From Parasitella parasitica NRRL 2501 (taxonomy: Eukaryota > Fungi > Mucoromycota), in NCBI GenBank assembly GCA_025201805.1, contig MU619335.1:64975-117550 (forward strand): a DNA stretch of 52,576 bases. Reading direction: 5' to 3'. Each line of letters begins with the position of its first letter. Position 1 is the stretch's first letter. Under the pieces are notes generated by a model. The model made no database searches. It was not told where the DNA came from and saw only the letters and a list, made by a program, of their open reading frames with translations. The position numbers were made by a program, and so were the translations under genes. Positions 45,954-51,082 of the stretch are shown here, one piece after another.

Positions 45954-46531
45954 ATTCAATAAATTATGCAAACCACACCACTACCTTCACCGCCTTCACC
46001 ATAATCACCACCTTCTCCCTTTATTAAATATACTTTTTCTCTTTGAATTAAGAATACATGCGACTATATATCGATAAATCTTTTTTTTTTTTTTTATTTC
46101 GTTCATCAATGTGGAAACTTTCGATGACCAGAATAACAGATCTTGCCCTAAATTTTGAGCCAATTTGGCATTAATACGCTATTCCCTGAGCTGAAAATGT
46201 CTCTCTTTTTATGTTCAAGCTAAGGTAGTTGACTTTTGGCAGTATTTAGATATTACTGTTGCCTTTGTAGATATTGCTGCCATTTGTATTAATTTAATAC
46301 GGCCGGAGCGAAAAGCTTGCTGACAGCTTACATTAGATACATATTAAAGCAATCTTATCAAAATTGAGCAGCTAAATAGCACAGGCCTTTTATCCACAGC
46401 ATAACAAAAGTTGGTTACTGAATTTCACCTGTTTAGCTTTGCTTATGTTGCTTTTCTTAATTAGAGGCCTTACAGTTGACGAAACTAGGTTGGGTCAATG
46501 AAAATAAATTTTGGTCATTTCCAAATTGAGT

Positions 46532-46664
46532 TGGGACACGATTACAAAAATGGGCCACTACTAGGAAAATGGGTCACGAATACGAAAATGGGACGTTAAT
46601 ATGAAAGTGGGACATCGACATGAAAATGGGACACATAAGAGAATACGAGACACGAACACAACTG
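46532..46664 (+). repeat. Left subterminal array of 19-bp units (TGGGAC-N9-AAAA), 6 clear units plus 1 degenerate
   Basis: TGGG starts at 46532, 46551, 46570, 46589, 46608 and 46627, an exact 19-bp period. Confidence 0.9.
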
Positions 46665-47340
46665 TGGAACTATACCGAACAGATTCAAAGAGTTTTTTTC
46701 TTGGTTCAATTTGAGGGCGCAGCCCTGAAAACAGCAACCTTTTATAGAACTTGTATCATATTCTAGTACTTTATGATCTAAGTGCCAAAGTCAAAATTTA
46801 TTTGTGTACTATTTTTACTTGGCTAACAAGGCCTTTAAGTAATAGCTGAAATAATTCTGCTCAGGTCTAAAAATGAATTGAATATGTTATCTTGTTTTTC
46901 TATTGTTGTTATACCCAATGCCAAAATGGGTGCTCTTACCAAAAAAGAAAAAAAAAGCATGATATACATCAGTATCGCGATCGAAAAAATCAATCAGGTT
47001 TGTTGGTTAATTGAGTTGGTAAATAGATAGAAAAGTAGATTGACAAGTAGTACTTCGAAAGCTTTGTATAGATTCATTTCAGTTAAAATCTAAATGAGGA
47101 TATTCTCGATGAAAACTAGCTAGGTATTTATAATTTATTAAAAACAGAGTCTGGTCTTGATATACAATATAACAACATTGGCAGCCGGGCGATATCAGTA
47201 ATTGGATTAGAAAATATATCAACAGGTGGGACCCATGTGTGTGCATTCTCTTTCGGATCTCTCGATCGGGTTGACAAGATTTGATCTAGTTGACAGATAA
47301 ATGTTGTCTTGAACTCTTTTTACTTCTTTTCAATTAACCA

Positions 47341-49960
47341 ATGCCACGCATACCTATTTACCCTGAAGTGGAGAAGTTCATAATCCTCAAGAAACGTACA
47401 AAGCTAGAGGAGGTCGAATCTGATAACAAGAAAGAAAACTCTACCACTCAGACCTCAAAGAGAACATGTAAGTAAAAAGACACTTTATGTGATTCCAAGG
47501 TTTTACAAGCTAATGCATATAAAGCTACCAAGAGGAAGGACTCTCCTGCTTTAACAACAGCAAAAAGGAATGCAAAGAAAAGTCGCCAAGCTAGTACTTC
47601 AGCAGCATCATCCTCTAAGAATAATTGTAGCTCTTGTCAAGAGGAAGGGCATAGCTCTGCAAGAAGTTCCCAATGCAAAAACTATAATCCAAAGCTACCG
47701 GAACGTCTACAAATCAGACTTGGATCCCATCAAAGATACACTCTCTCTGTTCCATTTGAAACTCTTTGTAATGATACTCCAAACAAAGCCAATGCTTTAA
47801 AAAAAGTCAAGGGCATATCAAGCTTTGTCTGTGAAGTCTTGTTCAAAGCTCAACTATTTGTAAACCATTTTATTCTGCAACATCCAAACAAGCTGACAAA
47901 TGACTTCTTTGATCAAAATTTTTGGTATACTATTTCAAGAGTTATTAGGGGCAGCTCAAATAAAGTAAAGCCAACTCTGCAGGCTTACAAAGATACGAAA
48001 AAGGAACGACCTGCAGGATAGAACCTAGATGTGGATCAACTTGCGAGCTCTTTTGTTAACTTGTCTGCTACTTCAAATGGTAGCTTATTTGTTTCAGAAA
48101 ATGGATTAAAGAATTATGGACAATCTCTGTCAACTGCATGCGAGACTGTCGCAACAGCATATAACAACTACTATATTGAAAACTTTGAAAAAATCATATG
48201 CGACTACTTCATATATACACTGAAGACAGAGTACCCCGTAAGTAACGAGACATAATAACAAGCACTTCAATATACATGTTCAATTTCTCAAATTGTTATA
48301 CTAAAATTACATAAACTAGGATGCGAAGATCAGCTGTATCAAGAACTTGGTATATAATCACGTATACAATCAAGTGCTTACACATTCCCAACCTTCATCT
48401 GTATCTGTTGATATTCTTGCCCTATTTGATCCGGATGTGGCCAGTAATCTTACAATTTTCTTAAATCCTTTGATTTTAGAGGTCAAAAATCGCATTTCCA
48501 CGCTTCCATTGACTAAAGAAAGCTTAAACAATGAACCCTTCAAAATTTTACCGCCATTACGGTATATCCTCAACAAATACGATGATATATACAGGACCCA
48601 AGCTGCTCAAAAAGACAAGGCCGACTCAACGAAGCCCCCGCTTCCAAGACGTTTTAGTTTATTCCCAAATCCCTCATTGCACTGGCGGTTCATAAAGATT
48701 GATGCCCAGAACCTGACCGGAATTTTCCCAGAGGCCAAGCAAAAGAAGCAAGCCAATGAATCCTCTTTTGATCATCAACAAAGGTGCTTCTATCAAGCTT
48801 TTGCTTTCAAAAAGCTGGGTATTCAAAGGCAAATACTGCTAATACACATACCTATGAATCAAACTGCTGATAAAAAAATATATAGTTGTGAAAAGCTTCT
48901 AACATTGCCTGAAGAAAAAGGAAGAATGTTTCTTAACGGATTGTACACTGATGGCTATACGTGCAGAGTTTTATTTGCTAGAAGAGTGCTTCCATCATCT
49001 CCAGAAGACAATACCTGTCTAGAGTTGGATGATTTTTCAAGCGAAGAGGTGAACAAGCATTTCCGTCCATGCACTGTAGACCCGGGAAGACGGGATCCTT
49101 TCGTCTCTTATCATGGTGGTACTGACATACGTCGCTTGTCCTCAATCGAATACTATAATATGGGTGGAAGTGTAACAAGAATGAAAAAGCAACAGAAACA
49201 CAAACAAGAACTAGGCATTGAAAAGATTGAAACAGACATTCCCTCGCCTAAAACTGCATCTGTGGAGCAATTTGTTCTGNNNNNNNNNNNNNNNNNNNNN
49301 NNNNNNNNNNNNNNNNNNNNNNNNNNNNNNNNNNNNNNNNNNNNNNNNNNNNNNNNNNNNNNNNNNNNNNNNNNNNNNNNNNNNNNNNNNNNNNNNNNNN
49401 NNNNNNNNNNNNNNNNNNNNNNNNNNNNNNNNNNNNNNNNNNNNNNNNNNNNNNNNNNNNNNNNNNNNNNNNNNNNNNNNNNNNNNNNNNNNNNNNNNNN
49501 NNNNNNNNNNNNNNNNNNNNNNNNNNNNNNNNNNNNNNNNNNNNNNNNNNNNNNNNNNNNNNNNNNNNNNNNNNNNNNNNNNNNNNNNNNNNNNNNNNNN
49601 NNNNNNNNNNNNNNNNNNNNNNNNNNNNNNNNNNNNNNNNNNNNNNNNNNNNNNNNNNNNNNNNNNNNNNNNNNNNNNNNNNNNNNNNNNNNNNNNNNNN
49701 NNNNNNNNNNNNNNNNNNNNNNNNNNNNNNNNNNNNNNNNNNNNNNNNNTAAGCCATGACAACGAAGAAACCAAAATCCATCAGGTATTGAAGTGTAAAA
49801 CTTGAATATTTACTGGAATCGCGATGCCATGGCCTCAAAGAACATGCTCACCATTGCCACATCAATTTGGTGTGGAAATGGCCGCCCCCAGGTCTTCAAA
49901 AGACATACCGCCACCTCCAATGTGGTTGTTGCTGCTCACTCCGGTGAGTCAGCAACTTAA
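47341..49960 (+). pseudogene. Fanzor1-type (TnpB-derived) RuvC nuclease gene, multi-exon, apparently inactivated in this copy
   Basis: RRFSLFP.PS...RFIKID, LYTDGYTCRVLF, RuvC-I TVDPGRRD and EYY..GG. After the gap come HQVLKCKT[C] and RuvC-III WNRDAMASKNM..GRPQVF. Introns at 47468-47524 and 48238-48319, probably also 48829-48885. In-frame TAG at 48019-48021 and a 1-bp deletion near 49805. Confidence 0.88.
49280..49749. other. Assembly gap (470 N), expected to hide the RuvC-II motif
   Basis: Run of N. Confidence 1.
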
Positions 49961-50185
49961 AGATATTGCAGGTAAGAAGCTGTAACAATTCTGATTCTTC
50001 TGAAAGATACTAACATTGTCTCCATGTTCGTACTCATGTCCCATTTTCATCTTGTTGTCCCATTTTCGTATTCGTGACCCATTTTTGTAATCGTGTCCCA
50101 ACTCAATTTGGAAATGACCAAAATTTATTTTCATTGGCCCAACCTAGTTTCGTCCGTCAACTGTACTAGTGTACTTGAATCGTCA
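49900..50185 (+). ncRNA. Candidate Fanzor omega-RNA precursor (scaffold overlapping the ORF 3' end; guide from right flank)
   Basis: 12-bp hairpin at 49928-49956; position matches the known TnpB/Fanzor layout. Boundaries are inferred. Confidence 0.55.
50018..50100 (-). repeat. Right subterminal array of 19-bp units, 4 clear units plus 1 degenerate
   Basis: CCA unit ends at 50024, 50043, 50062, 50081 and 50100. Confidence 0.9.
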
Positions 50186-51082
50186 TATTTTTCCTGAAAG
50201 CCAAGTCAACGAAAAAATACAAACAACACCTTTTAAAACTATTATCTATTTTTTAGATAAAGATAATTAATGTCAATTAAACTATGATAAAGATATGAAC
50301 CTTGTTGTGTCCATAGAGTACCATGGCTACCACTATTTCAACTCGGTTGTCATGGCAGTCATTCCTGATCTGATCTTGAGGCTAAATGTCACCGTGTTAC
50401 TGTATTCTATTACAATAAATAGAAGTAACAATAATAGAGTGTCGTGTCGTATAAGAAATCATCTTAGGTTCTACTTATTAAATTACGAAGTTAAGCTTAC
50501 CGATGAATGATTCACATTCATAATGATTACCTGATTAAATATAGAGATAGGTCTTGATCTGGCTACTACTGTGTTATGCTCTTGTTTGACAATTAAAATG
50601 TCAAACATGATTAGATTGTATTCATTGACTGGCTCATAAAGAATTTATTCTAGTTTGAATAGACAACCTCATGTCAATCAATGAAATTAATAGCTTAGTA
50701 TCTGGTAAATTAAGTTTTTATTACTTTCTTTTTCTTTCATCATATACAATCACCCACTTTACTCATTTTCAAGACTGATTTATCAGAATGAGAAATTATT
50801 CAAATAAAACGGTTGTGAATTAATCAGGTTAAGATCTCGTTTATTACATGGAAAAATGATGATTTATATACTAGTGAATCTAAATGGACTGAGGAGGGGG
50901 ATAAGATATAAGTGCGAGACATGCTGTAAACTAGAGAATGGACGATAGATTTTATCTATTGTCCATGAACATGTCATGTTAAGTTATAAATAAGGAACAT
51001 GATCCATTGGGATATGTTCCTAAATTGTGTTCAGGATTGAGTTTACTAGAGTTTGACTTTCGGTTGGGAAATCGACACATCA

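Follow-up and report, generated by a model that had tools for sequence, protein, structure and literature searches.

The omega-RNA of TnpB in bacterial IS200/IS605 elements is encoded at the right end of the element, takes its guide from the flank and originates from the 3′ part of the nuclease transcript. These elements have no long TIR and no spliceosome, and their scaffold directly adjoins the end of the element. The guides of Fanzor and TnpB have to lie next to flanking DNA, yet in eukaryotes many Fanzors are carried by cut-and-paste elements whose TIRs are long. Host splicing is known to shape non-coding RNAs, as in mirtrons, intronic snoRNAs and the 3′ end of fission-yeast telomerase RNA.

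The closest described systems are the omega-RNAs or reRNAs of Fanzor1 (SpuFz1, GtFz1, PpFz1 and the SfAV Fanzor1), which lie at the 3′ end of the nuclease gene, overlap its stop codon, begin with a conserved stem-loop, vary in the middle and have their last stem beside the guide (PMC11423790, PMC10711439, PMC10432273). The TIR end and the target-site duplication (TSD) are part of the Fanzor1 reRNA scaffold, with a guide of ~15 nt beyond the TSD (PMC10711439; review PMC13565253). PpFz1 has the smallest scaffold, in which a 7-bp SL1 is followed by a short SL2 and then by the guide; the sequence of its omega-RNA, given in Table S3, comes from a prediction based on heterologous expression in S. 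cerevisiae: SL1 is followed by a 7-nt linker that includes the stop codon, by TGCAG/GTAAGC and then by colinear sequence (PMC11423790).

Here, we describe a Fanzor1 locus in a window of 52,576 nt from Parasitella parasitica NRRL 2501, the window being the whole stretch of DNA that was analysed. The locus resembles the Fanzor1 systems in having a putative guide RNA where the nuclease gene ends, overlapping the stop codon, with a first stem-loop that is conserved, a middle that varies and a final stem predicted to lie beside the guide; the TIR end and TSD would likewise belong to the scaffold and the guide would come from the flank. With IS200/IS605 TnpB it shares the right-end RNA gene, the predicted flank guide and the 3′ transcript origin. 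The described Fanzor RNAs are colinear with the DNA and the IS200/IS605 scaffold lies directly at the element end, with no long TIR in between, whereas here 176 nt of TIR between scaffold and terminus are spliced out. In mirtrons, snoRNAs and telomerase RNA, what results is either the intron or the product of first-step cleavage; at this locus the exons, once ligated, would make up the functional RNA. IStrons, which combine a group I intron with TnpB, are reported to place splicing and guide-RNA formation at the same transposon end (PMC10690162, PMC13521648); their self-splicing intron is reported to compete with formation of the omega-RNA, whereas the spliceosomal intron considered here would be needed to create the guide-adjacent scaffold. 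In the literature searched, no Fanzor guide-RNA gene was described as having a spliceosomal intron. Our analysis points to the spliced 3′ region most likely being a Fanzor omega-RNA precursor with the flank as guide, a reading to which we assign a probability of roughly 0.6.

The element that carries the locus has the following parts.

46473-50163 (3,691 bp), + strand: TIR transposon with Fanzor1 as sole cargo, non-autonomous and Tc1/mariner-like (from TIR arms, termini and copies)
46471-46472, unstranded: TA target-site duplication, left copy (sequence reading)
46473-46650, + strand: left TIR with an array of 19-bp units at 46532-46645 (repeat comparison)
50022-50163, + strand: right TIR (inverted-repeat comparison)
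50164-50165, unstranded: TA target-site duplication, right copy, which closes SL2 in the spliced RNA (sequence reading, folds)

The termini are inverted (CAGTTGACG...CGTCAACTG) with TA on either side, and the TA duplication together with the CAGT..ACTG inverted ends is of the Tc1/mariner type. The TIR arms match each other over 46478-46610 and 50022-50154, with a 19-bp array in each. No transposase (DDE/D) gene was found in the element, nor any ORF or Pfam match beyond Fanzor; since the Fanzor gene fills the 3.7 kb, the element is non-autonomous, a cut-and-paste transposon of Tc1/mariner type that lacks a transposase. The source genome (32.8 Mb) holds at least 24 copies, 94-99% identical and with unrelated flanks, and all 24 have CAACTG/TA as their right end. 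The TIR motif CTAGG (46487-46492; 50143-50147) reads as AG/GTTGGG close to the left terminus and as CCTAG/ close to the right one.

Four public runs were compared with positions 46400-50400 as small contig-level sets (X1, X2, the metatranscriptome X12, and X13, which is DNA). From such data the presence of a junction can be read, but not RNA ends, levels or spliced/unspliced ratios. Together with the reading frames, they define the gene as follows.

47124-47184, + strand: 5′ UTR intron, GT..AG, 61 nt (X1 joint 47121>47183, cut +2)
47341-47467, + strand: coding exon 1, with the ATG at 47341 (reading frame, X1 contigs)
47468-47524, + strand: intron 1, GT..AG, removed in X1 and X2 (joint 47467>47525)
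47525-48236, + strand: coding exon 2, with an in-frame TAG at 48019-48021 in the window copy (frames, run contigs)
48237-48319, + strand: intron 2, the exact cut uncertain by 1-2 nt (X1 loose end 48238, frames)
48320-48828, + strand: coding exon 3 (frames, run contigs)
48829-48885, + strand: intron 3, GC..AG type (AAG/GCAAAT...ATATAG/; X1 loose ends 48828 and 48884, frame kept)
48886-49960, + strand: last coding exon (exon 4), with RuvC-I TVDPGRRD and a C-terminal NRD motif (sequence reading)

By its RuvC-I motif the cargo is a Fanzor1, for which the window's own sequence offers weak support: exon 4 aligns weakly with SpuFz1 (8gkh) around the RuvC-I aspartate, at E 0.28. For the homologues P0147 and P0014, SpuFz1 is the only PDB match (E 1.8e-4 and 9.3e-4). 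The C-terminus, read directly as ..NIYWNRDAMASKNM.., contains the RuvC-III RD motif that is conserved among relatives and ends with the stop codon TAA at 49958-49960. The visible exons of the window gave no Pfam family because the diagnostic domain is masked: the zinc-ribbon region falls in a stretch of N (49280-49749, 470 bases in the Fanzor gene), and homologous stretches are masked in most other copies too. The zinc-ribbon/TNB domain PF07282 is carried by the relative L039.

The window copy itself is dead, a pseudogene with an in-frame TAG, a 1-nt deletion and a 4-nt terminal insertion. Position 48019 is T in the window copy, giving TAG, as opposed to C in X1, X13 and X2, which makes CAG in the transcribed copies; the deletion lies near 49804, before the NRD motif, and a C is present behind 49804 in the same three runs. 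The transcribed copies read through where the window copy is interrupted. The 5′ UTR intron is spliced in X1, and therefore transcription starts upstream of ~47060, implying a start inside the element, yet beyond the left TIR.

A further intron follows the stop codon at the right end.

49972-50147, + strand: spliceosomal intron, 176 nt (GTAAGA..CCTAG), containing the right TIR's 19-bp array and the greater part of that TIR (X1 contig)
50008-50014, + strand: TACTAAC, candidate branch site, 133 nt from the acceptor (sequence reading, copies)
50148-50163, + strand: terminal mini-exon, the element's last 16 nt (12 in other copies), predicted loop and 3′ arm of SL2 (X1 contig, copies, folds)

An earlier note, made from the letters of the window, had claimed a donor CAG/GTAAG (49972), the motif TACTAAC (50008-50014), an AG-free tract (50007-50145) and TAG/ at 50147, and had remarked that the one left-array unit bringing AGs onto the + strand is missing from the right array. 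All of this is indeed found in the sequence: the donor reads CAG/GTAAGA at 49969-49977, placing the intron 11 nt past the stop codon, AGs occur at 50005 and 50146 with none between, and the unit at 46551-46569 has no right counterpart. The same note had predicted junction reads of the form ..GATATTGCAG/TTTCGTC.. and, as a result of the splicing, the loss of the 19-bp array and most of the TIR. An X1 contig of 415 nt and depth 901 bears out both. It runs from 49750 to 49971 and continues directly with TTTCGTCAACTGTA, the last 12 bases of the family plus the TA duplication, matching the predicted junction exactly; no X1 contig covers 49972-50042. X1 is RNA, as four other introns of the same gene (the 5′ UTR intron, intron 1, intron 2 and the apparently GC-AG intron 3, the last type read from loose ends) are spliced in it. 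Hence the intron is real, and its GT..AG borders and exon-exon junction in RNA are those of a U2-type intron. The transcript reaches at least the TA duplication, because the contig stops at TA, where the copies diverge. X12 contains a single colinear, unspliced contig of 151 nt, which must come from unspliced molecules or from DNA.

A DNA deletion derivative or an assembly chimera could mimic such a junction without any RNA splicing, and it could be argued that the junction rests on one contig with a 14-nt overhang from a library whose type is not on record. This is scarcely credible, since the deletion occurs in 0/24 genomic copies and the skipped part has exact GT..AG borders; moreover, the contig has a depth of 901, a chance match of 14 nt has a probability of ~4e-9, and the four other introns are spliced in X1. 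Very improbable, too, is intron mimicry of the introner-like kind, in which splice sites at the ends would remove the element from host read-through transcripts. Removal of the whole element is conceivable given the AG/GTTGGG and CCTAG/ that CTAGG provides at left and right, but GTTGGG is a poor donor, the run contigs contain no joint of the left end to 50148, and the donor actually used is internal, beside the Fanzor stop codon, and conserved with the scaffold.

The distance from acceptor to terminus is 16 nt in the window copy versus 12 nt in the other 23 copies, owing to a 4-nt insertion (50152-50155). As for the idea that the donor and the AG-free tract are kept across the family, exactly one AG follows TACTAAC in 24/24 copies, but the length of the tract is not exceptional: five AG-free runs of at least 140 nt occur on the + strand of the window, and length was dropped as an argument. 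Among 37 substitution variants in the tract, ~4 AG-creating changes were expected and 0 were seen, which is weak evidence. Conservation within the family says little because the copies are 94-99% identical, too young for it to serve as a sign of selection, and it was likewise dropped. What counts as the main evidence is the RNA junction together with the diverged lineages described below.

The RNA on both sides of the junction was folded, with spliced RNAs joined for folding only.

49910-49926, + strand: SL1 of the putative omega-RNA scaffold, GCCAC pairing with GUGGU (covariation, folds)
49928-49956, + strand: second hairpin, 12 bp with one bulge (folds)
49967-49971, + strand: UGCAG, exon end and predicted 5′ arm of the junction-spanning SL2 (folds)
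50166-50185, + strand: host flank, predicted guide segment by analogy with Fanzor1 reRNAs (PMC10711439)

The exon upstream of the donor (49908-49971) folds into two hairpins with a z-score of -4.47. In SL1 (49910-49914 with 49922-49926) compensatory changes have occurred in 3/5 pairs across lineages; all lineages have a second hairpin, whose sequences are unrelated to one another. With its structured RNA and conserved SL1 at the gene's 3′ end, this exon resembles the known Fanzor1 omega-RNAs. Rfam returned nothing at the gathering score, and two sub-threshold matches on the minus strand are due to chance. In every lineage the spliced RNA folds into three hairpins, of which the last spans the junction and is closed by the TSD: URCAG and the first bases of exon 2 form pairs with the terminal (A)CUG and with the duplication's UA, right after which the flank begins. 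For the window, the stem of UGCAGUU with AACUGUA that the earlier note had proposed forms in the minimum-energy fold. By contrast with the scaffold exon, the RNA of the intron has less structure than shuffled versions of it (z +1.43), and the unspliced RNA therefore has no fold that joins scaffold and flank.

An alternative stem, UUGCAG with CUGUAA, is possible in the unspliced window RNA (49966-49985), where it mimics the arm made of terminus plus TSD; an internal arm of a comparable kind occurs in the published PpFz1 RNA. The stem could be a decoy or a switch between two RNA forms. The sequence after this stem, an internal 'guide', matches only the homologous position in the family's own copies and was dropped as a candidate.

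To extend the comparison beyond the family, a profile-free search was carried out with exon 4, the protein exons being searched one by one. It gave 216 homologues, and loci were compared for nine. The lineages with defined elements are listed below.

Window 46473-50163, + strand: window family in the source genome, to which L040 (2135-5997, GCA_040367835.1) also belongs
L031, 1336-5390, GCA_025094135.1: ends verified by TIR and TA duplication
L033, 4231-7984, GCA_025094135.1: ends verified by TIR and TA duplication
L039, 4547-7863, GCA_040367835.1: ends verified by TIR and TA duplication

The earlier note had proposed a look at related elements, and donor, branch-like motif and near-terminal acceptor indeed recur in four diverged lineages. 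These lineages with verified ends, at 36-57% exon-4 protein identity to the window, have a plan in common: the stop codon is followed by a conserved linker (UUAAAGAU..), an exon end URCAG and a GU donor, the intron encloses subterminal repeats that are quite different between lineages and contains a branch-like motif, and the acceptor AG lies 8-12 nt from the terminus, which is followed by TA. In the window TACTAAC lies 133 nt upstream of the acceptor with no AG between, while the other lineages have ACTAAC or ACTAAT at 17-50 nt. The distant L034 and L038 neither support nor contradict the design, because their element ends are not definable.

These data bear on the question of whether the intron serves the guide RNA or merely the mRNA. 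If this were simply a 3′ UTR intron of the Fanzor mRNA with no guide role, the omega-RNA, if one is made, would be colinear, with its end within the element, or would arise separately. The spliced contig runs on without a break from the coding region and may be just mRNA, for which a junction 11 nt past the stop codon is harmless. In addition, unspliced PpFz1 RNA works in vitro, cutting DNA (PMC11423790). On the side of a guide role, that RNA, made in yeast, carries the same TGCAG/GTAAG unspliced at the matching place, behind a 7-bp SL1 and a linker. By our own count its 55-nt scaffold would close with UGCAG and CAGCA inside the would-be intron, so that the second stem, too, falls there. The colinear contig in X12 and the unspliced stem available in the window point the same way; furthermore, a CAG exon end and a CTG mariner terminus pair partly by default, and the window copy itself is dead. 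Against a plain 3′ UTR intron, a colinear guide would consist of sequence from within the transposon, the same in every copy and with a match to the element alone, and the intron RNA has no structure to bring scaffold and flank together. Nor does such an intron account for an acceptor 8-12 nt from the terminus despite unrelated intron contents between lineages, or for a TSD-closed junction stem in all of them. We regard a plain 3′ UTR intron as rather unlikely, though far less so than the two alternatives discussed above. The unspliced RNA may work in vitro with a 'guide' that is then transposon-internal. The PpFz1 omega-RNA was absent from the visible part of the source genome when searched with two patterns of 30-31 nt at up to 3 mismatches.

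The claim that the host spliceosome matures the omega-RNA thus holds in part: the splice is present in RNA, the design is conserved and the scaffold hairpin covaries, but the continuity of the spliced contig with the ORF leaves room for an mRNA. Under the omega-RNA precursor reading, a Pol II transcript would run through the right end into host DNA. The spliceosome cuts out the 176-nt intron 49972-50147, and the spliced RNA lacks the subterminal 19-bp repeats together with the greater part of the TIR, both of which the DNA needs for transposition. Splicing joins the scaffold, made up of SL1, the variable hairpin, the linker and UGCAG, to the last nucleotides of the element. UGCAG(UU) would then pair with (AA)CUG plus the UA of the TSD to form the last stem, with the host flank directly after it. 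Fanzor would presumably bind SL1 to SL2, 5′ and 3′ trimming would follow, and the flank after TA would act as guide. The single TA of the empty site would probably lie in the TAM, and A-T-A fits the published TAMs CATA and ATN.

If this reading is true, an intron that removes the TIR from the RNA explains how both needs are met, that is, how one element can have both long TIRs for transposase binding and a guide taken from the flank. A guide RNA assembled by joining exons of a Pol II transcript would be made by a new route, and Fanzor activity would be tied to host splicing. Pipelines that predict colinear omega-RNAs would mis-call scaffolds and guides at such loci. RNAs in their native form may perform differently in editing, because the published PpFz1 RNA carries the same unspliced donor. 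A wider generalization is tentative, and we put it slightly below even odds: across a broad group of Fanzor1 transposons in Mucorales, perhaps with the structurally solved PpFz1 among them, the spliceosome would be an obligatory guide-RNA maturation factor, and the ligated exons rather than a colinear transcript would be the native omega-RNA. Omega-RNAs defined by heterologous expression would in that case be unspliced surrogates.

L040, found in another assembly, is a member of the window family with ~96% protein identity and an intact donor, TACTAAC and acceptor; it reflects either the same species or a recent transfer. Its assembly, GCA_040367835.1, holds both L040 and the distant L039 lineage. 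L032, L035 and L037 are decayed copies. L035 (2857-7735, GCA_025201335.1) has a nearly identical TIR terminus (CAGCTGACGAAACTAGGTTGGGCCAAT), no 19-bp array and a 72-nt intron; apparently, the array can be lost while donor and acceptor stay.
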